A stretch of DNA of 64,000 nt from Lepidodermella squamata (Eukaryota; Animalia; Gastrotricha): assembly GCA_047495785.1 (NCBI GenBank), contig JBLDXI010000029.1, positions 3,534,001 to 3,598,000 of the forward strand, given 5' to 3'. This document shows, piece after piece, positions 2,906 to 62,178 of this stretch. The position numbers were made by a program, and so were the translations under genes. The notes beneath the pieces were generated by a model. The model did not search any database. It was not told where the DNA came from and worked only from the letters and a program-made list of their open reading frames with translations. The first letter of the stretch is position 1, and each line of letters begins with the position of its first letter.

Positions 2906-5494
2906 TTAAATACGTTTCAGCTCAAAATCTCGCAAGAATTGAACAACTTCGATCTGGTCATTTTCAGCAGCTATCGAGAGCGGGGTTGTGCCATCGTTGT
3001 CAGCCATAGAAACAGTTGCTGGAGCTAAGTTTGCCAGGAATCGAACAACTTCAATGTGGCCATTTTGACCAGCTATCCAAAGCGGCGTTACGCCATCCTT
3101 ATTAGCCATAGAAACCGTTGTTGGAGCCTTGTCTGCTAGGAATCTAACGACTTCGATGTGGCCGCTTTCAGCAGCTACAAATAGCGGGGTTGTGCCCTCG
3201 TTATTCGCCATAGAAACCGTGGACTCTGCTTTGTCTGCTAAGAATCGCACAATCTCGATGTGACCATTTTCAGCAGATATTGAGAGTGGCGTTCTGCCAT
3301 CGTTATTACACGCGGAAACTGTGGTTGGTGCCAGGATTGCCAGGAGTCGAACAACGTCAACGTGGCCATTTTGAGCAGCTATCCAAAGAGGCGTTATGCC
3401 ATCGTTGTCAGCCATAGAAACCGTGGTTGGTGCCGTATCCGCCAGGAATCGAACAACATTAATGTGGCCATTCTGAGCCGCAATCCAAATCGGGACTGTG
3501 CCGTTTTTATTAGCCATAGAAACCGTGGATGGTGCCTCGTTTGCAAGGAATCGAACGATTTCGATGTGGCCATTTTCGGCAGCAATTAACAACGGGTTTG
3601 TTCCGTTGTTTTTAGCCGTAGTTACCAGGCTTGGGGCTTTGTCTGCCAGGAATTTAACTACTTCGAGGTGGCCATTTTGAGCTGCAATCCAAAGCGGCGT
3701 TGTACCGTTTTTATTAGCCGTGGATATTGTGGTCGGGGCTTTATCTGCCAGGAATCGAACGACGTCGATGTGGCCATTTTCAGCTGCTAAAAAGAGTGGT
3801 GTCATGCCGTCGATGTCCCTCGAAGAAAGGGTATCACGTGACCTTCCAGCTGCGAATTCTATTATTTTTCTGTCGCCTAGTACAGCAGCAATGCCCACAG
3901 CTGTGCGTGCCTCTGCTGGGCTGAAATTGCGTTTCACCGCTGCTAAATCACGGCCTATAACCGATCGAATGAACTGTGACGTATCCTTGCTATTAATTAG
4001 GACAGCCACATTTCTTCTCGCTTGATATCTCCAGTAGTGGCCATTAAAGAAGTTCACTATTTTGTCTCTCTCGTGCTTCAGCATCTCTAATTCATCGTCG
4101 TTCCAAATTTGCATCAGAAATGCCAAGTCATTGTGGTCTGCTAGGCATTTTATGTGGCTTTGATATCGCGCTTCGTCGCCCTGCAGTCTTGCGAGTATCC
4201 ATGCAATCAGACGGTAGGAATGATGTGTTCCGTACATTTTAAATTCGTCCTCTGCGCCTCGACTGAAATTGTCGTCCCATTCCAAGCAATAGAGGAAATG
4301 AATGAAAGACTTGCCCTTATTAGATGTGCTATTAGACGTGCATACTTCCAACAATGCATCGCAACTCAAACCCTCCAGGATATCACGCAGCAGTTGCCGA
4401 TGGGCTGATTTATGCTTTTGGCTGTTTCCGCCCTTGAAAAACTCGAAAAGCATCATCTCAGCATTCGAAATATTCTTTCTGTGAAGAAGGAATAATCGGA
4501 CTTTGCCATACAGATCGGCGTCGTTTGAGGCAGTTATCTTAAATTCTTGAGCAGCTCGTCGAAAACCAGCTTCCCAAAGGAGTTGATGCACGGACGATAG
4601 CTCATGCTCTCCGCCAACTGTTCTGATAACAGCGCGCTGATCAAATGCATTGAACACGTCCTTTGCCCTAAGCTTAGGTGCAAGTTGGCGCCATATCATT
4701 GTCAGATTTTCGCTGGAAATTAGAGTGTTTGGCCCGAAAAGTAAGAAGGCATAGAAGCACTGTCTATAGTCGTGTCCGAGTCGGTCGAGAGAAAACTGCA
4801 ACAGACTATCGACAGTTTGTTCTTTGAAACGGGAATCACCGCCAGTAATAGAAGTATCAAGGTCGTTGGTCTTTTGCTGGACCACTTCTTCATACTCCTC
4901 GTCCCAATTGTAAGTTCCGAACATGAAGCGATTGGCGATGAGAGACATGATCAGAGGCACAACACATTTTCGAAAGGTTAGCTATCTTATCTTCGGCGTT
5001 CGCCTTGAGTTTCTCCTTCAACTTGCAAGTTCTTTCGAGAAATCTTTCAATCGCTTCATTCGTGAGACAGTCGATCTTCTCCAACTTGTAGATGAGCTGT
5101 CGCTGTTGCATTAGAATCGCAAATGGGTCACGGGTGATGACACAGCAGGCCATTTCTGATTGCTCTTGAACGAAGAAGCGAAGTAGCTCCACGTTGAACA
5201 TGTCATCGAGGACGACTAATACACGACGGCGCTTTTTCTCTCGAAAATACTCGCTAATATGAGATATTTCCGACCCATTAAAGTCCGCTGCGGCTTTCTT
5301 TGCCAGAGCTATTAGACTTTCACGGAATTCTTTCTTGGCTGAGTCATCAAAAGATGTTCCCTGCCACTTGAAACACTGAAGCCATAGAACAACCGTTGGC
5401 GATTGCAGCCCTCTTGGGATCGATTCGTTGCGTAGCAATTTTGCCATCAAAACAGACTTGCCTACTCCCCCCTCGCCAGCTACAACCAGAATGC
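2906..5494 (-). pseudogene. NB-ARC-ankyrin (9 repeats) NLR-like pseudogene, copy 1; TIR exons deleted
   Basis: Walker A GEGGVGKS, Walker B VLVVLDD, VITRD, VHQLL and 9 ANK units. A 4-nt deletion in the GLPL codons (~4960) frameshifts it relative to copies 2 and 3; upstream TIR exons are absent. Confidence 0.85.
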
Positions 5495-5849
5495 CTAGTT
5501 AAGACTTTTATTAAGCTGGATCGAAGAAACCCCGGTATTGCGCACACTGTTTGACACTTGATAAAATGCGTCCGAGAGTGAAATAAGTATGTCAGAAACT
5601 ATGAAGAATTAGGAGCTTTTACTCTATGTGTCAATCCCAAGATATCATACGTTTTCAGTATCATGAGTCTTCCCAGTTGTCGCTGTCGATTCCACTGACG
5701 AGTGTTCATCTACTTGCATCGCACAATTTCACATGTAAAAACAGATATGCTTTTCTGATAACCAATAGTTCTAATACTCAACAGAAATCGTACTAAAAAT
5801 CGAGAACTTACGCTTATCAGGTTTGAACAACCCGGCGGATTATCACTAT

Positions 5850-9940: not shown

Positions 9941-9949
9941 GTTGTGGAT

Positions 9950-14225: not shown

Positions 14226-17200
14226 GGTCGTATGACATTTCGGCCCGCGACTTTTTGGTTACGACTTTTCAGCCCCGACTTTTCAGTCCCGTCAATTGAG
14301 CCGAAAGACAATTCAGCCCGCGACATAAGAGCCAAAATTTAAATGAAAAAGAGCGACATTTTAGCCGCGACAATTCAGCGAGCGACGTTTCAGCCCAAAA
14401 TAATTATTTCAAAGACGACATTTCCGCATTCGACATTTTAGCCAGCGATAATTCAGCCCTAATTACAAATTTTACTGAAGTTCCTTTCCGACTTCATGAC
14501 TCCATAAAATTATAATAAGGGCAAAACCTGTTGCAAGCGCTTTTATTTTGAATTCTTAGAAAGATTGTTACAACTACAACGTCAGGCATAAATTTGAACC
14601 AGGAAAAACTTAATCGAAAATCGAGTTAACGTGTATTAATTAGTTAACCATTAATTACAATTAAAGTCTGATAACGCTAAAGAGAGATAGCAGTGCTCCG
14701 CAGTCTTAATCGGAGTCTTCATGACCGCCGTTTCCATCGTCGGCATCGTCTACTTCATCAGTCCGGAAGCAGCGGCTTGCAGCTCCGATGTACTGAAGAA
14801 GCTGGTCATCCGTCCAGGTGTCGCTTTCGTTCTCGTAGCGGCTTACGAGGCGCTGAAGGTTGTCGTCGAGGCGCTGGTATTCGGCGTTTCTCGCTCGTTG
14901 AATCCGGGCGCCGTTGCGGAAAAGTTGAACTGTTTGATTCGCCCAGTTCGCCTCATTTCGCAGGCGCTCGACAAAGACGTAAAACTGTGGGTGAGCGCCC
15001 AGCAAAGCCTGGATTGCAAAGTGCCATCCTTCCAAGCTGGCGTCAGATCTCGGCAGCCGCTGACTATTTTAAGTTGACACAATTAAGCAAAAATTAGTGA
15101 CAGAAATAAATGCTTACGAACCGGACTCGATCGAATTGGTTCCAGTCGCTGACACGATATCGCGGGGGGTGGTAACCATGCTGGTGGTAGCCGACGAAAT
15201 TCCGACGGAAATAATCATAGACATCCGCCAAGCGCGGAAACTCCACAAGGAGCTCCGCGATATTATCATCGAGCATGTCAAAAGCACTGGAAACGCGATG
15301 CGAGGGAAGAAATGCCAGAGCGGGTAGCATACGAACGGCTTTCCGCAGGGCAGCAGACCGATTTTACGCGCGGCAAAGGTGATACCTCCGTACCTAAAAT
15401 CGTTAAGTTGTTTGAAGCTTAGAAATGGATTTCAAATGCTAACCTGTTTTATTAGGCATTGGGCCAAGTGGAAGAAACAGCCCGCAAGGACAATGTTGCG
15501 GAAAATTTCCACGATTGATGACCGGCTGGCCCGTTCAAAGTCCATGATCATGGTTAGCGGTTGCTCACTCTCACCCTGTTCGCTGACAAGTAAGTCGCGC
15601 ACAACGGTAAACAGGCGATCGTAAGTGGCCCGGGTGCGATCGGGAAGCAAGGCGAAAAGAGCGGGCACGACAAGACCCATCGCAAGAACAACGTGAATCG
15701 TGAAAAGCTGCGCGAACAGCCCTGGGCAAACCTTGAATGTGCCATCAGCAGCGAGGTTTCGGTAGGTGTGGATCCATGACAGACTACGTCGTGTGCCGAA
15801 GAGGAAGAAACGACGCGGATCAGCTGGTCCGGAATCGTGTAGTACGAATGGCTCATCGGCATGCGTGGTAGATAACTCAACGGGAATCTCGATAGCAGCC
15901 AAGCTTGTGGGAGCATTGCTTGATGTGACCCTGCTACGGCGCCTTGCTCGTTGTGCCATTCGCAACTGGGCGGTTCGACTTGGCATGTCGAGAACAGCAT
16001 CGTCCGGTAACCCAAGAGTTTCACTTTGAAGGACGTTTCTGGTTCTTTCACTAGTAACTCCTGCTCGTTGCTGAAATTGGATATTAAAAAGATTAATTTT
16101 GAAAAATTTGAAAAAACATTTGAAAACATATTCAAAAAAAATTAAAAAATGGAAAAATTTAATAGAATTGAATCAATTCAAGTTCGAAAAAGGATCATTG
16201 AAAATATTGAAGTCAATAAATGCTAGAAAATAAAAAATAATAATAATAGTAAATTAAATTTTAATTTTAATTTTAATAAATTTTTAAAATTTTTAAAAAA
16301 TTTAACAATTTTAAAATTAAATTGAACAATTAAAAAAATTAAATTCATTCTGGTTAACTTATTCTACAAAAATTATTTATATAGTTAAATACCTTAATCA
16401 AATTTTTTGCATAATGAGCCATAAGCTCATTGTTGGTCGGAAGGTGATGATTGTGCTCCTGACCATTCTGTCCCGCCAGAGGTTGCAGATTTCTATCGCA
16501 AACGATACGACAGCGGCAATTTCCTTCGGCTTCATTGCAGCGCCAGCTCGAAGTTCCGTCAGGATGTTGCCGGTGGAAGCGAAACCGGCAATTTTCAAAA
16601 ACAACTAGAGTTTTTCCCCTGTTGGACACCAGTTGCCGAGGAACTTCCCACGTTCGAGTGATGGTTGGTGGCAGCAACCCACTGGGAGCAGCGTTTGGGG
16701 CAGCATTCGATGTCGACAACGTACGCTGCGAACGAACCAAAGGTATAGTGGGACCTCCGGTGGATAGCGTACGTCTTTGGCGATTCCCTTGGTTTCGATT
16801 CCGATGCACGACGAATTCTTCTTCAGATGACGAAGATAATCGACGCTGGCGAGGAGCAGCATTCGTGCGGCGATCGCTTGAGCTTGGCTGGAGTAGGCGC
16901 TCATTGAGGACGAATAGGTCATCGAATGGATCTAAAAAAACATTACGATGCATTTACAAAGGCGAGTATTTAAATAATACCGAAATCCAAATCGTAACCC
17001 GCAACATCAGCTGAATCGTCGTTTAGCCCACCGATGGCTTGGTCGAGCAAATGATCTTCTACGGAGAAGAGAATAAACGAATAAAAAATGGAAGAAAGTA
17101 AATGAATAAAGATGTTCACCTTGCCTAACAACTGAGGTTCCGGCTGCTTGGTTTGATGGACCACCTATAGGGAAGATTTTACAGTAAGATAATCTTAACG

Positions 17201-19197: not shown

Positions 19198-19844
19198 TAT
19201 ATCGGCCGAACCTTTTGCAATTTTTAAATTCAAGACCAGGTCCACTCGCCATAAGCCTGATGTGATTCCGATTCGAAGTAGTACAGCCGGAGAAAAGTTC
19301 TGCCGAAAATTGGTGGGATTTTGCGAAAGAATTACGCTAAAAAACACGCGCTTTTGTGAAGAGATCATGCTTAAAGAAAACCGCTATGAATTCTTGTTTC
19401 AAGCAGCGTGTCTCTTGTTCTTCTGTTCTCCATGCCTTACACTTATTTTAGTCTTTTGTTTGATGTCAGTATCGGTTACACGTAACACTGAGTAGCATAT
19501 CATTTCCTCTGCATTTGGAGGTCCTTTGAACGAATCATGTTGGAGCAGTGGTGCGCAAAGTTTTCAACTAGAGGCATAGAGATGATAGAGTGCTCACTCG
19601 CAGCTAAGAGGGTGGAACGCTACGGGCACCAGATGGTAGGGGATTAACTCATTGTCCTGCTAATATACAATTCGACAATTAATATACAAGATACTGAACT
19701 AAATACAATTCGATCGATTGCACTTATCGCTCGCTTCGATTGCTGGGGCCGAAGCTGGGAGTCGGGTCAATTAAACTTTGAAAGACGGCGGATTTTTTTA
19801 TACCAAATTTCTGCGTTCTGCGTTAACTCTGCCTGACCAGTCTA

Positions 19845-20543
19845 CACTCTCACAGAAAAGACGGGTTAGCGTAATGCAAAAAAACCGCATAAAGGCGCCT
19901 TAGCCTAAGGCGCCCTGTATTTTCGTAAGACGCCTTGAAGGCGCCTTTACTAATACGTCTTAGCCTGCTGAGGCGCCTTTATCAAGACGTCTTTGTGGCA
20001 GAATTGAGCTTTAAAGAAATCTATTAAAAAATCTATATAGGTTGTTGGGTTCGAACCCACGCACAATCATCCTCTCAGACAACCCATCATCCTCTCTGAC
20101 CACTACGCCACCACTGCTCTTGAAAACATTGTGCGATTTTTTGTTACTTGATCTGAATTTTTTTGGTCAGTTGCACTCGCAAAAAATGTCAAGTCCCTGA
20201 AAAGACGTCCTAAGAAGACGACTTGGTAAGGCATCTTTAAAAGACGACTTCGTAAGACGTCTTAAGAAGACGCCTTGGTAAGGCAACTTTAAAAGACGCC
20301 TGGGTAAGGCGTCCATGACGAAGACGTCTTGGCAAGGCGCCTTAAAATTTTTGATTTTTTGTCAAAGTCCCCGGCTGACCGAGTTTTTTGTCATTAATCA
20401 GCCTAGGCTGTGAATCACAGCCCTCTAAGACGCCTTGGAGGGATGAATCATGATGCAAGGCGACTTGAAGACGCCTTAAAGGCGCCTTGGAGCGGCTCTA
20501 AGGCGCCTTAGGCCTCATCAAACCCGTCCTAAAAATGAGAGTG
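19845..20543. mobile_element. Non-autonomous EnSpm/CACTA-type element
   Basis: CACTCTCA..GACGGGTT termini, 2-bp TA TSD, many AAGGCGCCTT/AAGACGTCTT subterminal palindromes; removal restores the transposase frame. Confidence 0.85.
20040..20118 (-). other. tRNA-derived Pol III promoter-like (SINE-head) segment inside the MITE
   Basis: A-box TGGCGTAGTGG and B-box GGTTCGAACCC about 40 nt apart; no complete cloverleaf. Confidence 0.55.
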
Positions 20544-22689
20544 TAGTTTGCGCGATTACTGCGCCTCTGTAAATTGCAACCCTGGTTATCTTCGTGATGT
20601 CATTGGCTCTATTTCGAACTGGTTAGTCGGTAAAGATGGAAGAATGTCTCAAATCGCCCTATCCTTGGATAGTATGTCAATCAGGAAAGACTGCATTTGG
20701 GACAGTAAGGACGAAAAGTTTGTTGGCACTGTCGATTTCGGTAATTCTGCAGCTGTTGGTTCAGATGGTGATGAAACAACTGCAACAGAAGCTTTAGTTC
20801 TGATGGCAGTTGGACTTCACGGTCATTGGAAAAGCCCATAGTTGCTTATGTTTTTGCCGATCATCCCGATGCCGAAATTTTGAAATCGCTCTTGAATGAT
20901 ACAATATCGGAGTTAGCAAAACAAAACATTATCACTCGAGCAGTTATTTATGATGGGGAAAAGGCTAATCAGCGGCTCGGACGACTGCTCGGCGCTGCGT
21001 TTGATGCCGACCCGGAAAAGTTGTCGTGTTCTTTCCAGCACCCCGACTTGCCAGACCCGATTTTCATCATTTATGACATTTGTCATTAGTTGAAACTGTT
21101 GAAGAATGCGTTGTCAGACTTGGGAATATATCACCTAAGAGATGGATCGAAAGTCGATTGGCGGTTTATTCTTGATTATTTTAAATTCAATCAACAGCAA
21201 AGCCATATAAAATTACCCGCACCTCTCTTCCCTTCCCCCTTCCCATATGGTTTGGGAAAATCAGAAAATGAAAGTTCGATTAGCGGTCTAAATTTCTAGC
21301 TTATATCAGTTGCCGATGCGATCAAGTACTGCCGCGAAACGCTGAAATTACCGCAGTTTTGTGGAAGTGAAGCAACCGAAGCCTTTATTCGCCGAATCAA
21401 CAATACCTTTGACCTACTTAATTCTCGTGTCGTGTCTGAGAAACAATTTCAAACAGCAATCACGAAGGAGAATTACGAATTTTCTTCATCCTATTTAATC
21501 GAAACCGCTCGAATTCTCGCAGATTTGGTTGATAACAATGAGAACCCATTCTACAAGCATCGGCGATCAACCGCAGTTATCGGCTTTTGCGTATCGATTA
21601 AATTAATTTTATCGTTATCGCATTATCTAAGCTGGAAAAATGATGGACAACCCCCAAGTTTCGATTCTTTCCCAAGCTATCGAGTCTCTCACAGTGTAGG
21701 AAGTAGCGGGGGGATGAAGGGGTTTACCCCCTCTTCGCGAATTGTTGCGCCCCCAAGAAAAGAGAACATCCCCCTTCTATACAGGTAATCGTAAATGTAT
21801 GGTCCCAGTTAACAAATACGCAATTTTCATTATAACATCGATATTCATGCATATTCTAACAATTTGTCGCTCGCCTGCTGTACCCTGCATTACACGCAGA
21901 TGGTTACTTATTTTGCGACAGCCAGTGAAAGTGAGTTCCTTTATTCCTCAGCACCTGTAAACGATAGTAGCCCAGGATTGATTAGCATACAATATTCTCA
22001 TTCTGCTTCCATATACAGCATTCAACAAGGAGAAATCCCATTTACATTGCAAAAATTAAAAAAAATTATTAGTAAAGACGGCGTGAAGCCTAATAGCAGA
22101 TGAACCATAAACCGGTGAATTATTTCATAAAGCCATTTAAAACACAGTGAAGCGCCGGTTTTGGATAAAGTTTTTATATGCCTACTACAATTGTTATTAA
22201 CCGAGCTTTCCAAATATGCTTAAAATATTTCTCCTATAACATCATAGATTTCGTGAAACTGAGGAGCAAAATACTAGCGCGCCTGAAATCACCGCGCGTA
22301 ATGGCGAGATGCTGCTTTTTTATTTGAAATTATTGTTAATCGGCCATTTTTTGCAGTCGCCGCGAAATCGCGCGTTCAAAAAGCAGTTTTTTGCTATCAG
22401 AATAATATTGCATGGAGAAGATGGGGAGTTTCGAGCCCATCTACTATTAGTCCCAAGAATAAAGCTACACTCCTTGGTGAATCCAAGTTAAGACGTCGAG
22501 TTTGTCGGTCAAAAACAAAGATTTTTTTCAAGTTTTTGGAAATATCATTGGATTTATTGCGCGTAAAATAAGGAACCAATTGGAAATACCTCGCGCGGGC
22601 TTTCTTTTTGAATTCTTCAAGTCAAAAGAAACCAAGTTTTTCCTGTACCATTCATCTGTCGATAAAAAGTTAAAATTGCCCTCCTCCCA

Positions 22690-23423
22690 CGGTGGTCTTC
22701 GCATCTCCATTGACTGAGCAGGATAGAAATAGAATGCTTTAGCAATGCCTCCATAGCGACAACCGTGCGTCCTTGGTGATCAAAAGAATGGCAGTGTTTT
22801 TTCAAGCGGCTTATAGGTTTTACAATGGCTTGGTAAACAACGAAATCTAAAACTTGTCAATGCCTGTTAAATACGACGTTCTGTTACAGTATGGGGCATA
22901 AATATTGAGCCGACTTTATTTATTCACAGCGCAGTCATTTCGGCTCCGATTCTCACAAATCTCATACCGTTGGAAAGCCCATGAAAAATGGTTTATTCCC
23001 CCTAAAATTTTCGATCAAGGGATCCAGACCAAATCCAAGTTATTGAAAGTTTAAGAAGTCGAGCCGATCGCACAAAAATCACCATCTGCTGAAAATAAAT
23101 CCTAGTTTTCGTACATATCAAAGGCAAACTCTGGACCCTGCCAAACCCTAAAAAATTGACGCATCACTACCCCGACATGCTCCAGACATCTCTGGCAATG
23201 ATTTGGGACATTGATATGTGCCCCATTGCGACACGATGGTATTTAACAGGCATTGACAAGTTTTAGATTTCGTTGTTTACCAAGCCATTGTAAAACCTAT
23301 AAGCCGCTTGAAAAAACACTGCCATTCTTTTGATCACCAAGGACGCACGGTTGTCGCTATGGAGGCATTGCTAAAGCATTCTATTTCTATCCTGCTCAGT
23401 CAATGGAGATGCGAAGACCACCG
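22690..23423. repeat. Perfect 185-bp inverted repeat (22690-22874 / 23239-23423) with diverged outer extensions, upstream of NLR copy 2
   Basis: Exact reverse complement; outer ~80 bp are diverged paralogs that also match ~57910-57990 upstream of NLR copy 3. Confidence 0.9.
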
Positions 23424-23778
23424 CGGTAGGAGGGCAATTTTAAATGTTTATTGAAAGATGAATGGTGATGGAAAACCTGGATTCCTTTCACTTGAAGAAT
23501 TAAAATCATCAAGCCTGGAGAAGTCTGAAACAATCATCTGAAAAACCTACAATATTCCTCGTTCTAGGAGTAGAATTCCAAAGATTTAGCGAGGCATTTC
23601 TATGTTTGCATTTTAGAATAATAAAACCTGATTGCTTGTGGGTTTCTACCAGCAACATGGGAAGCACATCAGGAAAAGTAGGTTTCACAAGAAACTTATT
23701 CGCTATCTACAAAATGGTGCCACTTTACAGCAAACTATCCCTCATGTAGAAGGGGCGAAAGGCTCGTCGGAATCGAAT

Positions 23779-26700
23779 ATGACGACAGAGGAGACTTCTT
23801 TATCGCAAAAAGTAAGCTCGAGAAATTAATTCAATGCATGTGGCTTGTAAACGTTTTTTTAACAGCAACCTATTACCGAATCGGGGAATTCGTCAGAATC
23901 AGCTGTCTCTACCAAAAAAGCTCGTGTTTTTGTGAGCTATTCTTGGAGTTATCGCGAAGCTGACGTTCGAAACCTCGCAGATGAATATCTCAGCCAACAG
24001 CCTGACTTCGATGTGTTTTTAGATATTCATAAAATCTGCGGTGATCTCGATCAGGCGATGATTGAGGCAAGTTTTCAATCTATTCCGAAGTTTCTCGCTT
24101 TAATGAGTCCAGTTATAGAAAGTCGACTGGGCTGATATCGTTGTTTGCTTCCTTTGCGAACCGTACCTTAGACCAGGTTCTAATTCCGCTAAAGAATTTG
24201 ACTACGCCATCTTCAAGAAAAAGAAAGTTCTCCTCGTCAATCTGGAAGATGACTTTGTCCGACTCGATGAGTCTCGAAACCTGGGAAATTTACTTCGAGT
24301 GTTCTTGCGAACGGAGGCCATGCACTTCCATGATGATGCAAATGATATTTGTCAGCAAATCCGACTGATACTGATGATGCCTGCCCAGAAAGCTGTCGTT
24401 TTGAATCGGTTCTACTGTCCGAACCTACCTATCAGCATCTCGAACTACTTTGAGCGGAATGAACTTGAAGCAAAAATGATGACATATCTAATCGATATCT
24501 GCAACCAACCAGCAAAAGGTAAGTAACCCTATTTCTGTAATCCACCTTCTAAAAGTCGTAAATAGGCAATACAAGCATTCTGGTTGTAGCTGGCGAAGGA
24601 GGAGTGGGCAAGTCTGTGTTGATGGCGAAATTGCTTGGTAGCGAATCGATCCCAAGAGGACTGCAATCGCCAACGGTTGTTCTATGGCTTCAGTGTTTCA
24701 AGTGGCAAGGAACATTTTTTGACGACTCGGCCAAGAAAGAATTCCGCGAAAGTCTATTAGCTCTGGCAAAGAAAGCCGCAGCGGATTTTACTGGATCGGA
24801 AATATCTCATATCAGTGAGTATTTTCGAGAAAAAAAGCGCCGTCGTGTATTGGTCGTCCTCGATGATATGTTCAACGTGGAACTGCTTCGATTCTTCGTG
24901 CAAGAACAATCAGAAATGTCGTGTTGTGTCATCACTCGCGACCCATTTCCGATTTTAATGAAACAGCGACAGCTCATTTACAAGTTGGAGAAGATTGATA
25001 GTCTCACGAACGAAGCGATCGAACGATTTCTCGAAAGAACTTGCAAGTTGAAGGAGAAACTCAAGGCGAACGCTGAAGGAAAGATAGCTAACCTTGCCAA
25101 AATGTGTTGTGGCTTGCCTCTAATCATGTCTCTCATCGCCAATCGCTTCATGTTCGGAAATTACAATTGGGACGAGGAGTATGAAGAAGTGGTCCACCAA
25201 AAGACCAACGACCTGGATACTACTCTTACCGGCGGCGATTCCCGTTTCAAAGAACAAACTGTCAATAGTCTGTTGCAGTTTTCTCTCGATCGACTTGGAG
25301 ACGACTATAGGCAGTGCTTCTATGCCTTCTTACTATTCGGGCCAAACACTCTAATTTCGAGCGAAAATCTGACGATTTTATGGCGTCAATTGGCACCTAA
25401 GCTTAGGGCAAAGGACGTGTTCAATGCATTTGATCGTGGGGCTGTTATAAGAACAGTCGGCGGAGCGCATGAGCTCTCGTCCGTGCATCAACTCCTCTGG
25501 GAGGCAGGGTTTAGACAGGCCGCCCAAGAATTTAAAATAACCGCCTCAAATGACGCCGATCTTTATGACAATGTCAGATTGTTCCTTCTTAACAGAAAGA
25601 ATATTTCGAATGCAGAAATGATGCTTTTCGAGTTTTTCAAGGTCGGAAACGGCAAAAAGCATAAATCAGCCTATCGGCACCTGCTGCGTGATATTCTGGA
25701 AGGCTTAAGTTGTGATGCATTGTTGGAAGTATGCACGTCTAATAGCAAAAGCGAGGGCAAGTCTTTCATCCATTTCCTCTATGGCTTGGAGTGGGAAGAC
25801 AATTTCAGTCGAGGCGCAGAGGACACATTTAAAATGTACGGAACGCATCATTCCTACCGTCTGATTGCATGGATGCTTGCAAGACTACATGGCGATCAAG
25901 CGCGATATCAAAGCCACATAAAATGCCTAGCAGACCACAATGATTTTACATTTCTGATGCAAATTTGGAACGACGATGAATTAGAGATGCTGAAGCACGA
26001 GAGAGACAACATAGTCAAGTTCTTTTATGGCCACCACTGGAGATATCAAGCGAGAAGAAAAGTGGCTGCCATAATTAATAGCAAGGAAACGTCCCAGTTC
26101 ATTAGATCGGTTATAGGCCGTGATTTAGCTGCGGTGAAACGCAATTTCAGCGCAGCAGAGGCCCGCACAGCTGTAGAGATTGCTGCGATACAAGGTGACC
26201 AAACAATAATAGCATTAGTAGCAGAAAAATCACATGGCGTTCTTTCGGCGGCTGAAAACAACGGCACAACTCCGCTTTGGATTGCAGCTCAAAATGGCCA
26301 CATGGAAGTTGTTCGATTCCTGGCAGACAAATCACCAACCACAGTTTCTACAGCTGACAACGTCGGCACAACCCCGCTCTTGATTGCAGCTGGAAATGGC
26401 CACGTGGAAGTTGTTCGATTCCTGGCAGACAAAGCACCAACCACGGTTTCTACAGCTGACAACGACGGCACAACCCCGCTTTGGATTGCAGCTCAAAATG
26501 GCCACATGGAAGTTGTTCGATTCCTGGCAGACAAAGCACCAACCACGGTTTCTACAGCTGACAACGACGGCACAACTCCGCTTTGGATTGCAGCTCAAAA
26601 TGGCCACATGGAAGTTGTTCGATTCCTGGCAGACAAAGCACCAACCACGGTTTCTACAGCTAATAACAACGGCACAACCCCGCTTTGGACTGCAGCTCAA

Positions 26701-29700
26701 AATGGCCACATGGAAGTTGTTCGATTCCTGGCAGACAAAGCACCAACCACGGTTTCTTCAGCTAATAACAGCGGCACAACTCCGCTCTTGACTGCAGCAC
26801 AAAATGGCCACATGGAAGTTGTTCGATTCCTGGCAGACAAAGCACCAACCACGGTTTCTACGGCTAATAACAACGGCACAACCCCGCTCTTGATTGCAGC
26901 TGGAAATGGCCACGTGGAAGTTGTTCGATTCCTGGCAGACAAAGCACCAACCACGGTTTCTACGGCTAATAACAACGGCACAACCCCGCTCTTGATTGCA
27001 GCTCAAAATGGCCACATGGAAGTTGTTCGATTCCTGGCAGAGAAATCACCAACCACGGTTTCTACAGCTGACAACGACGGCACAACTCCGCTTTGGACTG
27101 CAGCTCAAAATGGCCACATGGAAGTTGTTCGATTCCTGGCAGACAAAGCACCAACCACGGTTTCTACAGCTGACAACGACGGCACAACTCCGCTTTGGAT
27201 TGCAGCTCAAAATGGCCACATGGAAGTTGTTCGATTCCTGGCAGACAAAGCACCAACCACGGTTTCTTCGGCTAATAACAACGGCACAACCCCGCTTTGG
27301 ACTGCAGCTCAAAATGGCCACATGGAAGTTGTTCGATTCCTGGCAGACAAAGCACCAACCACGGTTTCTACAGCTGACAACGACGGCACAACTCCGCTTT
27401 GGATTGCAGCTCAAAATGGCCACATGGAAGTTGTTCGATTCCTGGCAGACAAATCACCAACCACAGTTTCTACAGCTGACAACGTCGGCACAACCCCGCT
27501 CTTGATTGCAGCTGGAAATGGCCACGTGGAAGTTGTTCGATTCCTGGCAGACAAAGCACCAACCACGGTTTCTACGGCTAATAACAACGGCACAACTCCG
27601 CTTTTGATTGCAGCTCAAAATGGCCACATGGAAGTTGTTCGATTCCTGGCAGACAAAGCACCAACCACGGTTTCTACAGCTGACGACGGCACAACTCCGC
27701 TTTGGATTGCAGCTCAAAATGGCCACATGGAAGTTGTTCGATTCCTGGCAGACAAAGCACCAACCACGGTTTCTACAGCTAATAACAACGGCACAACCCC
27801 GCTTTGGACTGCAGCTCAAAATGGCCACATGGAAGTTGTTCGATTCCTGGCAGACAAAGCACCAACCACGGTTTCTTCAGCTAATAACAGCGGCACAACT
27901 CCGCTCTTGACTGCAGCACAAAATGGCCACATGGAAGTTGTTCGATTCCTGGCAGACAAAGCACCAACCACGGTTTCTACGGCTAATAACAACGGCACAA
28001 CTCCGCTTTTGATTGCAGCTCAAAATGGCCACATGGAAGTTGTTCGATTCCTGGCAGACAAAGCACCAACCACGGTTTCTACAGCTGACGACGGCACAAC
28101 TCCGCTTTGGATTGCAGCTCAAAATGGCCACATGGAAGTTGTTCAATTCCTGGCAGACAAAGCACCAACCACGGTTTCTACAGCTGACGACGGCACAACT
28201 CCGCTTTGGATTGCAGCTCAAAATGGCCACATGGAAGTTGTTCGATTCCTGGCAGAGAAATCACCAACCACGGTTTCTACAGCTGACAACGACGGCACAA
28301 CTCCGCTTTGGACTGCAGCTCAAAATGGCCACATGGAAGTTGTTCGATTCCTGGCAGACAAAGCACCAACCACGGTTTCTACAGCTGACAACGACGGCAC
28401 AACTCCGCTTTGGATTGCAGCTCAAAATGGCCACATGGAAGTTGTTCGATTCCTGGCAGACAAAGCACCAACCACGGTTTCTTCGGCTAATAACAACGGC
28501 ACAACCCCGCTTTGGACTGCAGCTCAAAATGGCCACATGGAAGTTGTTCGATTCCTGGCAGACAAAGCACCAACCACGGTTTCTACAGCTGACAACGACG
28601 GCACAACTCCGCTTTGGATTGCAGCTCAAAATGGCCACATGGAAGTTGTTCGATTCCTGGCAGACAAATCACCAACCACAGTTTCTACAGCTGACAACGT
28701 CGGCACAACCCCGCTCTTGATTGCAGCTGGAAATGGCCACGTGGAAGTTGTTCGATTCCTGGCAGACAAAGCACCAACCACGGTTTCTACGGCTAATAAC
28801 AACGGCACAACTCCGCTCTTGATTGCAGCTCAAAATGGCCACATGGAAGTTGTTCGATTCCTGGCAGACAAAGCACCAACCACGGTTTCTACAGCTGACG
28901 ACGGCACAACTCCGCTTTGGATTGCAGCTCAAAATGGCCACATGGAAGTTGTTCGATTCCTGGCAGACAAAGCACCAACCACGGTTTCTACAGCTAATAA
29001 CAACGGCACAACCCCGCTTTGGACTGCAGCTCAAAATGGCCACATGGAAGTTGTTCGATTCCTGGCAGACAAAGCACCAACCACGGTTTCTTCAGCTAAT
29101 AACAGCGGCACAACTCCGCTCTTGACTGCAGCACAAAATGGCCACATGGAAGTTGTTCGATTCCTGGCAGACAAAGCACCAACCACGGTTTCTACGGCTA
29201 ATAACAACGGCACAACCCCGCTCTTGATTGCAGCTGGAAATGGCCACGTGGAAGTTGTTCGATTCCTGGCAGACAAAGCACCAACCACGGTTTCTACGGC
29301 TAATAACAACGGCACAATTCCGCTTTGGATTGCAGCTCAAAATGGCCACATGGAAGTTGTTCAATTCCTGGCAGACAAAGCACCAACCACGGTTTCTACA
29401 GCTGACGACGGCACAACTCCGCTTTGGATTGCAGCTCAAAATGGCCACATGGAAGTTGTTCAATTCCTGGCAGACAAAGCACCAACCACGGTTTCTACGG
29501 CTAATAACAACGGCACAACCCCGCTCTTGATTGCAGCTGGAAATGGCCACATGGAAGTTGTTCGATTCCTGGCAGACAAAGCACCAAATACGGTTTCTAC
29601 GGCTAATAACAACGGCACAACTCCGCTTTGGATTGCAGCTCAAAATGGCCACTTGGAAGTTGTTCGATTCCTGGCAGACAAAGCACCAACCACGGTTTCT

Positions 29701-29811
29701 ACAGCTTATAACAACGGCACAACTCCGCTTCGGATTGCAGCTAATAATGGCCACTTGGAAGTTGTTCAATTCTTACGAGATTTTGAGCAAAAACGTATTC
29801 AATGCCAATGA
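23779..29811 (+). CDS. TIR - NB-ARC - 35x ankyrin NLR-like receptor, copy 2 (exons ..23811, 23866-24066, 24119-24518, 24566-29811; start codon uncertain)
   Basis: TIR: VFVSYSW..VFLD..ADIVVCFL..Y..SNSAKEFDYA..KKVLLVNLE. NB-ARC: GEGGVGKS, VLVVLDD, VITRD, CCGLPL, VHQLL. All three introns splice in frame and are conserved in copy 3. Confidence 0.9.
26254..29775 (+). repeat. Coding tandem array of 35 ankyrin units (102 bp; five units are 99 bp) with higher-order duplications
   Basis: Unit xxxGTTPLxxAAxNGHxEVVxFLAxKxPTTVSxA; units 9-17 recur as 21-29 at a 1215-bp offset. Confidence 0.97.
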
Positions 29812-42812: not shown

Positions 42813-42955
42813 AGCAGTTGCCGATGGGCTGGTTTATGCTTTTGGCTGTTTCCGCCCTTGAAAAACTCGAAAAGCATCATCTCCGCATTCGAAATATTCC
42901 TTCTGTGAAGAAGGAACAATCTGACTTTGTCATAAAGATCGACGTCATTTGACGC
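42813..42955 (-). pseudogene. ~140-bp remnant of a further NLR paralog (post-NB-ARC helical region)
   Basis: ASNDVDLYDKVRLFLLHRRNISNAEMMLFEFFKGGNSQKHKPAHRQLL, matching ~4390-4530. Confidence 0.85.
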
Positions 42956-53949: not shown

Positions 53950-56900
53950 TTAAATACGTTTTAGCTCAAAATCTCGCAAGAATTGAACAACTTCGATCTG
54001 GTCATTTTCAGCAGCTATCGAGAGCGGGGTTGTGCCATCATTGTCAGCCATAGAAACAGTTGCTGGAGCTAAGTCTGCCAGGAATCGAACAACTTCAATG
54101 TGGCCATTTTGACCAGCTATCCAAAGCGGCGTTACGCCATCCTTATTAGCCATAGAAACCGTTGTTGGAGCCTTGTCTGCCAGGAATCTAACGACGTCGA
54201 TGTGGCCGCTTTCAGCAGCAACAAACAGCGGGGTTGTGCCCTCGTTATTCGCCATGGAAACCGTGGATTCTGCTTTGTCTGCTAAGAATCGAACAATCTC
54301 GATGTGGCCATTTTCAGCAGATATCGAGAGTGGCGTTCTGCCATCGTTATTACACGCGGAAACCGTGATAGGTGCCATGTTTGCCAGGAGTCGAACGACG
54401 TCGATGTGGCCATTTTGAGCTGCTATCCAAAGCGGCGTTATGCCATCGTTGTCAGCCATAGAAACCGTGGTTGGTGCCTTATCCGCCAGGAATCGAACAA
54501 CATTAATGTGGCCATTCTGAGCAGCAATCCAAATCGGGGCTGTGCCGTTTTTATTAGCCATAGAAACCGAGGATGGTGCCTCGGCTGCAAGGAATCGAAC
54601 GATTTCGATGTGGCCATTTTCGGCAGCAATTAACAACGGGTTAGTTCCGTTGTTTTTAGCTGTAGTTACCAGGCTTGGTGCTTTGTCCGCCAGGAATCTA
54701 ACGACTTCGAGGTGGCCATTTTGAGCTGCAATCCAAAGCGGCGTTGTTCCGTTTTTATTAGCCGTGGATATTGTGGTTGGAGCTTTGTCTGCCAGGAATC
54801 GGACAACCTCGATATGACCATTTTCAGCGGCTATCGAGAGCGGGGTTGTACCGTCATTGTCAAGCGTGGAGACCGTGGATGGTGCTTTCTCTGCCAGAAG
54901 TCGAACGACGTCGATGTGGCCATTTTCAGCTGCTAAAAAAAGTGGCGTCATGCCGTCGATGTCCCTCGAAGAAAGGGTATCACGTGACTTTCCAGCTGCG
55001 AATTCTATGATTTTTCTGTCACCTAGTACAGCAGCGATCCCTACAGCTGTGCGTGCCTCCGCTGGGCTGAAATTGCGTTTCACCGCCGCTAAATCACGGC
55101 CTATAACCGATCTAATGAACGTTGACGTATCCTTGCTATTAATTAGGACAGCCACATTTCTTCTCGATTGATATCTCCAGTAGTGGCCATTGAAGAAGTT
55201 TAATATTTTGTCTCTCTCGTGCTTCAGCAGCTCTAATTCATCGTCGTCCCAAATTTGCGTCAGAAAGGCCAAGTCATTGTGGTCTGCTAGGTATTTTATG
55301 TGGCTTTGATATCGCGCTTCGTCGCCCTGCAGTCTTGCAAGCATCCATGCAATCAGACGGTAGGAATGATGTGTTCCGTACATTTTAAACTCGTCCTCTG
55401 CGCCTCGACTGAAATTGTCTTCCCACTCCAAGCCATAGAGGAAATGGATGAAAGACTTGCCCTCGATTTTGCTATTAGACGTGCATACTTCCAACAATGC
55501 ATCACAACTTAAACCCTCCAGGATATCACGCAGCAGTTGCCGACGGGCTGATTTATGCTTTTGGTTGTTTCCGCCCTTGAAAAACTCGAAAAGCATCATC
55601 TCTGCATTTGCAACATTCTTTCTGTGGAGAAGGAACAATCGGACTTTGTCGTATAGATCAGCGTCATTTGAGGCGGTTATCTTAAATTCTTGAGCAGCTC
55701 GCCGAAAACCAGCTTCCCAAAGGAGTTGATGCACGGACGATAGCTCATACTCTCCGCCAACTGTTCTTATAACAGCGCGCTGATCAAATGCATTGAACAC
55801 GTCCTTTGCCCTAAGCTTAGGTGCTAGTTGCCGCCATAACATTGTCAGATTTTCGCTGGAAATTAGAGTGTTTGGCCCGAATAGTAAGAAGGCATAGAAG
55901 CACTGTCTGTAGTCGTCTCCGAGTCGGTCGAGAGAGAACTGCAACAGACTATCGACAGTTTGTTCTTTGAAACGGGAATCGCCGCCGGTAAGAGTAGTAT
56001 CCAGGTCGTTGGTCTTTTGATGGACCACTTCTTCATACTCCTCGTCCCAATTGTAAGTTCCAAACATGAAGCGATTGGCGATGAGAGACATGATCAGAGG
56101 CAAACCACAACACATTTTGGCAAGGTTAGCTATCTTTTCTTCGGCGTTCGCCTTAAATTTTTCCTTCAACTTGCACGTTTTGTCGAGAAATCGTTCGATC
56201 GCTTCATTCGTGAGACAGTCGATCTTCTCCAATTTGTAGATAAGCTGTCGCTGTTGCATTAGAATCGCAAATGGGTCACGAGTGATGACACAGCAGGCCA
56301 TTTCTGATTGCTCTTGCTCGAAGAATCGAAGCAGTTCCACGTTGAACATGTCATCCAGGATTACCAATACACGGCGGCGTTTTTTCTCGCGAAAATACTC
56401 GCTGATATGAGATATTTCCGATCCAGTAAAGTCTGCTGCGGCTTTCTTTGCCAGAGCTATTAGACTTTCTCGGAATTCTTTCTTGGCTGAGTCATCAAAA
56501 GATGTTCCTTGCCACTTGAAACATTGAAGCCATAGAACAACCGTTGGCGATTGCAGCCCTCTTGGGATCGATTCGTTGCGTAGCAATTTTGCCATCAACA
56601 CAGACTTGCCTACTCCCCCCTCGCCAGCTACAACCAGAATGCCATTATTGCCTAATTAAGACTTTTATTAAGCTGGGTCGATGGAATAAAAATATTTACC
56701 TTTCGCTGATTTATTGCAAATTTCGATAAGATGAGTCATCAATTTGGCTTCCAGTTCATCCCGCTCAAAGTAGTTCGAGATGCTGATAGGTAAGTTTGAA
56801 GAGTAGAACCGATTCGAAACAGCTGCTTTCTGGGCAGGCATCTCCAGTATCAGTCGGATTTGCTGACATACATCATTAGCATCGTCGTGGAAGTGCATGG

Positions 56901-57560
56901 CCTCCGTGCGCAAGAACACTCTAAGTAAATTCCCGAGGTTTCGAGACTCATCGAGTCGGACAAAGTCATCTTCCAGATTGACGAGGAGTAATTTCTTTTT
57001 CTTGAAGATGGCATAGTCAAATTCTTTAGCAGAATTGGAACCTGCTCTAAGGTATGGTTCGCAGAGGAAGCAAACAACGATATCAGCCCAGTCTACTTTC
57101 TATCGTTGCGAACATGAAGTGATAAATCTTAGAAGAGGCTGAAAACTTGCCTCAATCATCGCCTGATCGAGATCGCCGCAGATTTTATGAATATCTAAAA
57201 ACACATCGAAGTCAGGCTGTTGGCTGAGATATTCATCTGCGAGGTTTCGAACGTCAGCTTCGCGATAACTACAAGAATAGCTCACAAAAACACGAGCTTT
57301 TTTGGCAAAGGCAGCTGGTTCTGAAGAAGAGCTCGCCGATTCTTGAATAGGTCGCTGTAAATAATAAGGTTTTCTTATGCAAAATGTATGACATAAAGAT
57401 CTCGAACTCATACTTTTTGTGGAAGAGAAGTCTTCTTTGTTGGCAGTATCGTTTTTTTCTTTGAAATAAAATGATGATGTGTATGATTTGATTTTGACGA
57501 GTCTTTCACCCCATCTAAAACTTGAGGGGTGGTTTGCTGTAAAGTGACACCATTTTGTAG
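53950..57560 (-). CDS. TIR - NB-ARC - 10x ankyrin NLR-like receptor, copy 3 (exons ..57414, 57354-57151, 57099-56700, 56651-53950; start not resolved)
   Basis: Same TIR, Walker A/B, GLPL and VHQ motifs and the same three introns as copy 2, all in frame. Confidence 0.88.
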
Positions 57561-59670: not shown

Positions 59671-61590
59671 TTAGCATTTAAGTCCTTTTAGGTATCTAAC
59701 AATTTTGTCATAGCCATATTCAGCAGCTTGTGAAATCGGCGTTTCGCCGTATTTATTAACAGCGGAAACTGTGGTTGGCGCTTTTCCTGCCAGGAATCGA
59801 ACAACTTCGATGTTGCCACTTCCAGCAGCCATCAGAAGTGGGGTTGTGCCATTGTTATCCACCATAGAAACTGTCATTGGTGCTTTCTCTGCTAGGAATT
59901 GAACAACTTCGATATTGCCCTTTCCAGCAGCTATGAAAAGTGGCGTTTCGCCGGCGTTATCAGCCGCAGAAACCGTTGATGGAGCCTTATCCGCCAGGAA
60001 TCGAACAGCCTCGACACAGCCAATTCTAGCAGCCATCCAAAGCGGAGTTTTTCCTTCGTTATCAGCCACCGAAACTGTAGCTGGCGCTTTCTCTGCAAGG
60101 AATTGAACAACTTCGAAATGGCAATTTTGAGCAGCTATCAAAAGTGGAGTTGCGCCGTTTTTATTGGTCGCCGAAACGGTGGTTGGTGCTTTCTCCGCGA
60201 GAAATCGAACAACGTCGATGTGGCCTTTTTGAGCAGCCATCCAAAGAAGGGTTCCACCTTCGCTATCGGCCGCGGAAAGCGCAGTTGGTGCTTTTTCTGC
60301 CAGGAATTGAACTACTTCGATGTGCCCGTTTTCAGCAGCTATCCTAAGCGGGGTTTTGCCATTTTTATCAGCCGTGGAAACCGTGGCTGGAGCTTTTACT
60401 GCCAGGAATCGAACAACCTCCACGTAGCCATTACCCGCAGCCATCCACAGCGGCGTCGCGCCGTTCTCATTAGCTGCGAAAACCGTGTTTGGTGATTTCT
60501 CGGCAAGGAATCGAACAATTTCGATATGGCCTTTTCTCGCGGCTATCAACAGCGGCGTCGCGCCAATGTTATTAGCCGTGGTAACTGTTTTTGGCGCTTT
60601 TTCCGCAAGAAATCGGACAACATCAATGTTACCATTTTCAGCAGCCATCCATAGCGGGGTTGCGCCGACGTTATTCACCGCTGAAAGCGTATTTGGAGCT
60701 TTCTCCGCGAGGAATCGAGAAACTTCGATGTGACAATTTCCAGCTGCTGCCAGAAGGGGGGTTACGCCGGCGTCATTAGCGGCAGAAATCGTTTTTGGTG
60801 CCTTGTCTGCCAAGAATCTAACCACATCGATACAGCCCATTTTAGCAGCGATATAAAGCGGGGTTGCGCCGTCGCTATTTGCCACAGAGACCGTAGCAGG
60901 TGCTTTCCCCGCCAGGAATCTAACAACTTCGACGTGGCCATTTTGAGAAGCTATCCAAAGCGGGGTTTTACCGCTGTAATTAGCCGCAGAAACCGTAGTC
61001 GGTGCTTCCTCTGCGAGAAATCGAACGATTTCAATGTGGCCATGCTCAGCAGCAATCCAAAGCGGGGTTACGCCGTTACTATCAGCCGTGGAACTTGAAG
61101 TTGGTTCTTTTCCCGCCAGGAATCTAACAACTTCGATTCGACCCATTCTAGCAGCAATCCAAAGCGGTGTTGCGCTTTTGTCATTAGATGCTGAAACCGT
61201 CGCCGGCGCCTTGTCGGCTAGAAATCGGACTACTTCGATGTGGCCATTTTGAGCAGCTACTAAAAGTGGGGTTTCGCTATCGTAACTTGCCGTGGAAATC
61301 GTGGGTGGTGCCTTTTGAGCCAGGAATTGAACAACTTCGGCGTGGCCGTTTTGAGCAGCAATCCAAAGCGGGGTTTTGCCGTCTTTGTCAGCCGTAGAAA
61401 CTGTGGTTGGTGCTTTGTCTGCAAGGTTTTTAACAACTTCGATATTTCCATTTTGAGCAGCGATCCAAAGCGGCGTTCTGCCTTTTTTGTCACCTGCTGA
61501 ATGAAAACAAAATGATTTTTCAGTTGCAAATGCTGTCATCCTTAATTCACCCTGTGTCGAAGCAATCTCTGCTACGGATTTGCCGGCCAT
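59671..61590 (-). CDS. Ankyrin-repeat-only protein, 18 diverged 34-aa units of the same family as the NLR sensors
   Basis: Units end FLA(D/E)KAPxTVSxA as in the NLRs; likely 54-nt in-frame intron at 61497-61550; no TIR or NB-ARC upstream. Confidence 0.85.
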   Translation of the reverse strand: MAGKSVAEIASTQGELRMTAFATEKSFCFHSAGDKKGRTPLWIAAQNGNIEVVKNLADKAPTTVSTADKDGKTPLWIAAQNGHAEVVQFLAQKAPPTISTASYDSETPLLVAAQNGHIEVVRFLADKAPATVSASNDKSATPLWIAARMGRIEVVRFLAGKEPTSSSTADSNGVTPLWIAAEHGHIEIVRFLAEEAPTTVSAANYSGKTPLWIASQNGHVEVVRFLAGKAPATVSVANSDGATPLYIAAKMGCIDVVRFLADKAPKTISAANDAGVTPLLAAAGNCHIEVSRFLAEKAPNTLSAVNNVGATPLWMAAENGNIDVVRFLAEKAPKTVTTANNIGATPLLIAARKGHIEIVRFLAEKSPNTVFAANENGATPLWMAAGNGYVEVVRFLAVKAPATVSTADKNGKTPLRIAAENGHIEVVQFLAEKAPTALSAADSEGGTLLWMAAQKGHIDVVRFLAEKAPTTVSATNKNGATPLLIAAQNCHFEVVQFLAEKAPATVSVADNEGKTPLWMAARIGCVEAVRFLADKAPSTVSAADNAGETPLFIAAGKGNIEVVQFLAEKAPMTVSMVDNNGTTPLLMAAGSGNIEVVRFLAGKAPTTVSAVNKYGETPISQAAEYGYDKIVRYLKGLKC

Positions 61591-62178
61591 GGACGCTAGC
61601 AGCAAACCAAAAAAGCGGTTGCAATCACTTTTAAGTTTGGCATCATCGATTGCAGCCTCAGCCGCAATGCACCGAAACTACGTATCCTGGAAACATCAGC
61701 TTTGTTAATACATAAATAATTCACGAGGAGTCAATCGATTTATGCGCTAGCTCTAATTGTACAAGGGCAATGCATAAGGGCCCCTTTTCTATTAGGGCAC
61801 CCACGCTCTTTTAAAATGATGTAAGGAATACCTTGATGGATAAGATGTTAAATACCTTAAAAATGGGTACAATTTAGTCAAAAGTACATTTTCAATAGTT
61901 CATTCATTGAAAGTACAACGAGTCCCTTTTTATTGAGAGTATACTCTCCATGGGGGATTGATCACTCACAACATATAGAAAGAAAAAGGCCTATTGAAAG
62001 TTAACTCTCGACGATCCGACACTCTCAAGTTAACTCAATGTTTTAAAACTAAGCCTAAGGAAAACTGACCATTTAATCTTTATTGAAAAAAATTCAAAAA
62101 GGCTCACTACTCATCTCATCTCATGGCATAAGCCCTTAATTCTCACAGCTTCTGCTGACTGAGGTTCATCCGGCTCGT

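Follow-up and report, generated by a model that had tools for sequence, protein, structure and literature searches.

Putative TIR-NB-ARC-ankyrin receptor genes in a cluster of the gastrotrich Lepidodermella squamata

In animals, STAND proteins with a TIR head or an ankyrin sensor have been described as two-part combinations. TIR-NB-ARC proteins were reported for amphioxus (PMC2246300), TIR with NACHT/NB-ARC for Hydra viridissima and NACHT/NB-ARC with ankyrin for Acropora (PMC7642931). The NB-ARC proteins of placozoans carry WD40 or TPR repeats (PMC6321704). We investigated a stretch of 64,000 nucleotides of Lepidodermella squamata (assembly GCA_047495785.1, contig JBLDXI010000029.1, positions 3,534,001 to 3,598,000 of the forward strand), named the window in the following, in which one gene (gene A, 23779-29811, + strand) combines three parts: a TIR-like head, an NB-ARC switch and an ankyrin array. 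Like the proteins of amphioxus, Hydra and Acropora, gene A belongs to those animal STAND proteins in which death-fold heads have given way to TIR, or LRR, WD40 or TPR repeats to ankyrin, and which underwent lineage-specific expansions. The domain combination is real and fairly unusual for a bilaterian, and it belongs to a known, STAND/NLR-like kind. TIR together with NB-ARC and ankyrin was not found in print, including the literature on Gastrotricha and other Spiralia. The novelty expected in a preliminary description of this DNA has to be tempered in view of the published two-part combinations. Divergent, uncharacterised TIR clades were mapped in invertebrates (PMC13142454); the Lepidodermella genome paper contains no mention of the receptor genes described here (PMC11660948).

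The plant TNL receptors RPP1 and Roq1 share with gene A the order of parts, namely a TIR head, an NB-ARC with the same motif set and a C-terminal repeat sensor. In contrast, plant TNLs have LRR and C-JID, whereas gene A has an ankyrin array and a divergent, TIR_2-like TIR. To our knowledge, no EDS1-type pathway exists in animals. Most likely, the TNL-like architecture arose independently by domain shuffling. Compared to the canonical animal NLR (death-fold-NACHT-LRR), gene A contains NB-ARC instead of NACHT, and neither LRR nor death-fold matches were found with Pfam on gene A. The bacterial TIR-STAND protein P0014 (TIR_2-NB-ARC-WD40), one of 35 matches of the NB-ARC region described below, also carries its TIR_2 head directly on NB-ARC, and bacterial TIRs are the nearest profile and embedding neighbours of the TIR of gene A. 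Spliceosomal introns, the ankyrin sensor and the animal context distinguish gene A from these proteins; the identity is only about 20-23%.

Animal NACHT STAND proteins with TIR-like NADase heads were described in 2026 (bioRxiv 10.64898/2026.09.21.753143). These TeTIR-NACHT proteins (TEP1, NWD1/2) are likewise animal STAND proteins with a TIR-like head and a catalytic Glu, for which gene A has a candidate. NADase activity and cell death were shown for TEP1 (10.64898/2026.09.21.753143). However, TeTIR heads comprise 200-350 residues with an RWG loop and stand on NACHT with WD40 or TPR repeats, whereas the head of gene A has about 140 residues without RWG and is followed by NB-ARC and ankyrin. 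Fungal NLRs are also STAND proteins and, as gene A, contain near-identical tandem ankyrin, WD or TPR repeats, which diversify by recombination; their ankyrin repeats mostly follow NACHT and in a minority are paired with NB-ARC (PMC4986451). In fungi, the head is a HET, HeLo, Goodbye, PNP_UDP or similar domain and, unlike in gene A, not a canonical-size TIR.

As stated in the preliminary description, the track of single open reading frames (ORFs) contains only the NTPase and ankyrin parts of gene A, in one ORF of 1735 codons (24604-29811). Four exons joined as 23779-23811, 23866-24066, 24119-24518 and 24566-29811 resulted in 1959 codons with no internal stop. The following parts were assigned, with the evidence given last:

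23779..23811, + strand: putative exon 1 (ATG and 10 codons), tentative; first ATG in frame, with a GTAAGC donor after it
23812..23865, + strand: intron 1, 54 nucleotides, GT-AG; 68% identity with copy B
23866..24066, + strand: exon 2, N-terminal TIR/STIR half (strand A, helix A, strand B, BB loop, helix B), putative; Pfam, PADLOC, ESM atlas, hhalign
24067..24118, + strand: intron 2, 52 nucleotides, GC-AG (GCAAGT donor); kept in copy B
24119..24518, + strand: exon 3, C-terminal TIR-like half, putative, with a short linker and the pre-P-loop helix of NB-ARC; Pfam, ESM atlas, NB-ARC alignments
24194..24196, + strand: Glu codon GAA in SNSAKEF, candidate catalytic Glu; sequence and a low-confidence hhalign extension
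24519..24565, + strand: intron 3, 47 nucleotides, GT-AG; 67% identity with copy B
24566..25500, + strand: first part of exon 4, NB-ARC (nucleotide-binding domain, helical domain 1, winged helix); Pfam, motifs, AF2, Foldseek
25501..26256, + strand: helical linker in exon 4 (similar to helical domain 2), between NB-ARC and the repeats; AF2, Foldseek
26257..29811, + strand: ankyrin array in exon 4, 35 units, with the stop codon at its end; TRF, Pfam, unit table

Exons 2 to 4 belong to one spliced gene with TIR-like, NB-ARC and ankyrin parts, which is supported by five independent lines of evidence. The comparison with the paralogous copy B of the window showed 90-92% identity for the exons and 67-70% for the introns, with intron positions kept. 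The exons are under purifying selection. Between both copies, dN/dS reached 0.14 in the TIR exons and 0.17 in the exon of the NB-ARC (dS about 0.3); thus, the upstream TIR exons are coding and constrained like the rest of the gene. In the public run X1, one contig matches gene A up to 24066 and continues with AAAGTCGAC, the first nine bases of exon 3 (24119). Of the three junctions proposed for examination, 24066/24119 is joined by this contig, while no contig of the run spans 23811/23866 or 24518/24566. The spliced protein was aligned with phmmer to NB-ARC relatives that are uninterrupted, and the alignments begin 25-45 residues ahead of the exon 3/4 junction. Since the alignments of these relatives (among them P0001, P0002, P0005, P0006 and the Apaf-1-like P0015 of Trichinella) cross the junction, exon 3 holds the pre-P-loop segment of the same NB-ARC. 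Exon 4 contains no ATG before the P-loop. Intron 2 is GC-AG, not GT-AG, in both copies. Alternatives for this intron (GT donor at 24071, acceptors at 24113 and 24119) were rejected; they gave lower TIR scores and a broken alignment at the junction. As ORF-only gene calling overlooks the TIR exons, families of this type are probably under-counted in invertebrate genomes with poor annotation.

The NTPase is a bona fide NB-ARC with the fold of nucleotide-binding domain, helical domain 1 and winged helix domain, an assignment we regard as solid. Pfam NB-ARC (PF00931) reached 39.8 bits (cut-off 23.5) with E 4e-10. NACHT was examined as the alternative and rejected in view of its E of 0.11 and of the NB-ARC fold. 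In the alignment with 27 relatives, GEGGVGKS, LVVLDD, ITR, GLPL and VHQ fall in this order into the columns of P-loop, Walker B, RNBS-B, GLPL and MHD; in VHQ, the Asp of the MHD motif is replaced by Gln. An AF2 model based on this alignment had a pLDDT of 74.6 and a pTM of 0.73. With this model, Foldseek detected full-length Apaf-1 (6e-12) and the NB-ARC of tomato NRC1 (TM 0.68). NRC2, CED-4, ZAR1, RPP1, Roq1 and WRR4A were also among the 50 Foldseek matches listed, and no NACHT protein was. The hallmarks of NB-ARC rather than NACHT noted earlier are therefore confirmed by profile, motif columns and the Apaf-1/NRC1/CED-4 fold. The linker was predicted as all-helical with lower confidence, and the Foldseek alignments to full-length Apaf-1 cover 436-455 columns. 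A word-indexed protein search with the NB-ARC region gave no match.

For the TIR-like head, the exons were scanned separately with Pfam against 24,736 models. TIR_2 (PF13676) matched exon 2 with profile positions 1-35 (E 0.12) and exon 3 with positions 49-112 (E 0.14); an E of about 0.1 each corresponds to a p of about 5e-6 for a pre-specified TIR_2 family. Because of these profile positions, the two exons can be regarded as colinear halves of one domain. With our own, narrow profile of bacterial TIR_2 proteins, the alignment passes through the exon 2/3 junction (...DQAMIE/KVDWADIVVCFL). In hmmsearch with this profile, the joined exons scored 14.6 bits, compared to 9.7 bits for exon 2 alone, 7.6 and 6.8 bits for the alternative joins and 7.6 bits for the best of 2000 shuffles. 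The hhalign probability was 93% (E 3e-7) for the joined exons, 84% for exon 2 alone, 2.6% for exon 3 alone and at most 4.4% for reversed or shuffled controls. Exon 2 gave PADLOC matches to bSEFIR (1.3e-5) and ThsB (0.024). In the ESM atlas it was placed next to SEFIR/TIR_2 clusters (0.93), its ten best matches all belonging to one clan; exon 3 was placed next to ThsB/TIR_2 clusters (0.90). The narrow profile gave no signal past strand C, that is, in the C-terminal half, and a word-indexed protein search with exon 3 found no match. From these sequence comparisons, the N-terminal half of a TIR-like domain is well supported, and the predicted C-terminal half, including the Glu, is weakly supported. 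Splicing gives an open frame with two colinear TIR_2-like halves; of the complete TIR domain claimed previously, the second half is a candidate.

The candidate catalytic Glu was found as a GAA codon at the position described before and is present in both copies A and B. It is located 13 residues past the end of strand C. In the plant pattern S-x-x-Y-x-x-S-x-W-C-x-x-E, the Glu stands 12 residues past the end of this strand. Structural equivalence of the Glu of SNSAKEF to the catalytic Glu of SARM1 or plant TIRs is only somewhat more likely than not. By analogy, NADase activity of the head may be given slightly less than an even chance.

In the ankyrin array, TRF detected 34.6 copies with a period of 102 nucleotides and 92% matches, which corresponds to 35 near-identical units of 34 residues; Pfam Ank_2 matched over 34 stretches with E = 0. 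The units vary at few positions only, namely 6, 7, 10, 14, 32 and 34 of the unit as cut here. In the numbering of designed ankyrin repeat proteins (DARPins), we take these positions to be the tip of the beta-turn and the first helix, the usual binding face. Furthermore, a higher-order repeat of 12 units was found, with blocks of about 12 units recurring almost exactly. An array of 35 units with variation at few surface positions represents a natural case of repeat-library diversification.

Gene A is the only copy in the window with an ATG and all parts. Besides it, the cluster contains the following elements:

53950..57354, - strand: copy B, exons 2-4 (57354-57151, 57099-56700, 56651-53950), TIR-like part, NB-ARC and about 11 ankyrin units
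2906..5529, - strand: copy C, starting inside intron 3, without TIR exons, frameshift near 4960 (GLPL region)
42813..42955, - strand: linker-region fragment of 143 nucleotides, 91% identical to 25543-25685
59671..61605, - strand: ankyrin-only ORF, 19 units, about 76% nucleotide identity to the array of gene A

Copy B has 1101 open codons across exons 2-4 and introns of 59, 51 and 48 nucleotides; its intron 2 has the same GCAAGT donor, and the equivalent of exon 1 lies at 57446-57414. Of the two intact copies reported before, gene A and exons 2-4 of copy B are open, but copy B contains no in-frame ATG and is not demonstrably intact. Copy C is frameshifted and also has no TIR exons. One fragment was found (42813-42955). 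The orphan 5' end reported before was not found: in searches of the window with tblastn (E<=10) and blastn-short, A and B were the only copies with TIR exons. For the ankyrin-only ORF, no NB-ARC was detected upstream within the window. Copies C and B are joined by a segmental duplication in the same orientation (1499-5524 = 52466-56681). Since this duplication occurs together with a frameshifted, truncated copy and fragments, birth-and-death evolution, as suggested earlier, is a fair description. In general, turnover of the cluster takes place through duplication, truncation and the expansion of repeats. The duplication has 87-94% identity over the receptor gene; its flank is 96.5% identical and contains exons similar to Cys-loop channels (ORFs 1470-2051 and 52275-53024, weak match to Neur_chan_LBD).

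An exhaustive phmmer search with the NB-ARC region against 1.84 billion cluster representatives resulted in 35 proteins with E<=0.001, four of them with E<=1e-10; the best of the 35 matches had 29% identity. This search supports a receptor family that appears restricted to the lineage, in agreement with the lineage-specific family proposed previously. The top matches (P0001-P0005) are unnamed NB-ARC or NB-ARC-ankyrin proteins, and the contigs of the P0001, P0003 and P0005 clusters are metagenome contigs of the ENA. Neighbour genes are Band_7 and a protein kinase at locus L001, and CBM_14, a K2P-type channel and TLD at locus L002. Upstream of the closest NB-ARC-ankyrin relatives (L001-L004, 23-29% identity) no TIR exons were found, and their N-termini are helical or unannotated. 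Because these N-termini are non-TIR, the TIR head is considered specific to the branch of this lineage. An upstream ORF of L001 shows a weak match to the N-terminal domain of plant R1 (PF12061, E 2e-4).

With a probability of roughly 70%, we consider the cluster to encode paralogous cytosolic STAND (NLR-like) receptors with a compact head of TIR/STIR fold, an NB-ARC switch with helical linker and a variable ankyrin array. A mechanism can be proposed by analogy to Apaf-1, plant TNLs and bacterial TIR-STAND proteins. In this mechanism, the ankyrin array would keep the protein off and sense a ligand, the binding of which would lead to nucleotide exchange and oligomerisation of NB-ARC. Oligomerisation would gather the TIR heads, and the gathered heads might cleave NAD+ or nucleate TIR-TIR signalling. 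As to the biology, immunity or cell death would be the most likely role. A further-reaching version is a spiralian 'resistosome' similar to plant TNLs but built independently, that is, an expanded, fast-evolving family with a canonical-size NADase TIR, which is driven by NB-ARC and activated by oligomerisation, a recombining DARPin-like ankyrin library for aiming it and, in part of the family, a start codon supplied by a spliced leader. In this full form, the idea is tentative and rather unlikely.

Several observations weigh against these receptors as described. The Pfam scores of exons 2 and 3 (13.4 and 13.1 bits) are both below the TIR_2 cut-off of 28, sequence searches of the PDB with exon 2, exon 3 and an exon-3 profile found nothing meaningful, and an AF2 model of exon 3 alone had a pLDDT of 39 and was discarded. 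The assignment of the Glu as catalytic residue, claimed before, goes beyond its presence in SNSAKEF: only a low-confidence hhalign extension, with a gap of four residues, aligns it with the Glu conserved in bacterial TIRs, and the region of helix C does not show the usual S-x-W-C-x-x-E context. The nearest NB-ARC relatives have no TIR, thus a function is not transferable from orthologues. The evidence for transcription is one contig of X1, a run that gave only contigs and whose RNA status is a guess; therefore, the contig indicates one spliced molecule and is not a proof of expression. Exon 1 and the ATG of gene A are doubtful: over exon 1, A and B share only 72.7% identity, a value resembling that of the introns. 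Copy B has CTG at the ATG of gene A and an insertion of 32 nucleotides, and no in-frame ATG occurs anywhere upstream. Finally, the array of 35 near-identical units could be inflated by assembly. The near-exact recurrence of blocks of about 12 units, however, indicates recent unequal exchange, and inflation by assembly is less likely.

Different explanations of the same genes have to be considered. With an identical architecture, the TIR-like head might be a non-enzymatic scaffold. Instead of cleaving NAD+, it would recruit other TIR/STIR proteins on oligomerisation, in the manner of TLR-MyD88 signalling. The majority of animal TIRs act as adaptors, which fits such a scaffold. Animal adaptor TIRs were placed in clade 1 (PMC13142454). 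The very divergent C-terminal half, with 2.6% in hhalign for exon 3 alone and a Pfam E of 0.14, and a Glu without W-C context at a spacing 1-4 residues off the bacterial TIRs point in the same direction. In contrast, the nearest neighbours of the head are bacterial TIR_2, ThsB and SEFIR and not the animal TLR-type PF01582, and the Glu is found in both copies at the expected helix. Moreover, the TIR heads of STAND proteins in plants, bacteria and animal TEP1 are NADases (10.64898/2026.09.21.753143). The scaffold is possible, but we consider it unlikely. Still less probable is a protein that does not sense pathogens, be it an Apaf-1-like regulator of cell death or stress or a system for allorecognition or the control of selfish elements. 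Among the Foldseek matches listed, the NB-ARC fold is closest to Apaf-1, the distant matches include an 'Apaf-1' of Trichinella and Dark_WHD, and the cluster lies among transposons (RVT, MULE, FLYWCH, KDZ-like transposase). Apaf-1, however, is normally single-copy with CARD and WD40, whereas many paralogues, fast-changing repeat arrays and pseudogenes are the usual signature of an immune receptor family.

The cluster might also be decaying, most or all copies being relics and the array of gene A a recent expansion or an assembly artefact. This would agree with the truncated and frameshifted copy C, the absence of an ATG in copy B, the fragments at 42.8 kb and 59.7-61.6 kb and the almost exact repetition of 12-unit blocks in gene A. 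But the dN/dS values of 0.14-0.17, obtained for A versus B from 2 kb of coding sequence, 1959 and 1101 codons without stops and the spliced contig of X1 argue against decay, which we regard as improbable. A wrong gene model, with the TIR exons forming a small gene of their own upstream of one for NB-ARC-ankyrin, would explain why no read of X1 crosses 24518/24566 and why the nearest relatives are NB-ARC-ankyrin proteins without TIR. The pre-P-loop segment, contiguous in the uninterrupted relatives, is nevertheless located in exon 3, exon 4 has no ATG before the P-loop, and arrangement and phases are kept in copy B. Two separate genes are therefore very improbable.

Read as a receptor family, the cluster would add a bilaterian case of a TIR head on an NB-ARC switch, a pairing best known from plants and bacteria. 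The ankyrin sensor on TIR-NB-ARC bears on the question whether TNL-like receptors originate repeatedly by domain shuffling. If the TIR cleaves NAD+, animals would have, next to SARM1 and the TEP1-type TeTIR, a third kind of TIR-type NADase, in this case in an expanded receptor family. The window shows the receptor genes as a cluster, with an array of 35 units, a GC-AG intron and a copy B that has no start codon.

Concerning the 5' end, the depth of run X1 was zero upstream of 23864, exon 1 included. One conserved motif lies upstream of the ATG of gene A:

23724..23730, + strand: TTTACAG, acceptor-like, possible spliced-leader acceptor, within a block conserved with copy B; function predicted

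Both this TTTACAG and the exon-2 acceptor are in phase 0. The motif is conserved upstream of both copies (23700-23811 on the + strand, 57414-57560 on the - strand), and copy B has no genomic start codon. The missing ATG of copy B and the conserved TTTACAG may bear on the use of spliced leaders and on AUG-less genes; a leader-dependent start is a lead and not a finding. Directly upstream of gene A, an inverted repeat of 268 nucleotides (94%; 22607-22874 and 23239-23505) forms a foldback. Since pieces of it are also located upstream of copy B (57906-57988), it might belong to the duplicated unit or represent a miniature inverted-repeat transposable element.

The window is eukaryotic with 36-50% G+C and contains many transposon ORFs of the types RVT_1, MULE, FLYWCH and KDZ-like transposase. 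Between the receptor copies, a reverse-transcriptase ORF was detected (39160-40086, - strand, RVT_1 E 9e-33). The 699-codon ORF at 45646-47745 (- strand) had no Pfam match; its neighbours in the ESM atlas (0.93-0.98) are Transposase_21, Plavaka and DUF1258. Since the nearest clusters are of these types, it probably encodes a KDZ/CACTA-like transposase. Blocks with 99.6-100% identity (8662-9941, 12927-13997 and 19420-19911), in inverted and direct orientation, flank a MULE transposase ORF (15432-15986) and a FLYWCH ORF (16354-16953). These blocks might mark the ends of a large element or result from a chimeric assembly.

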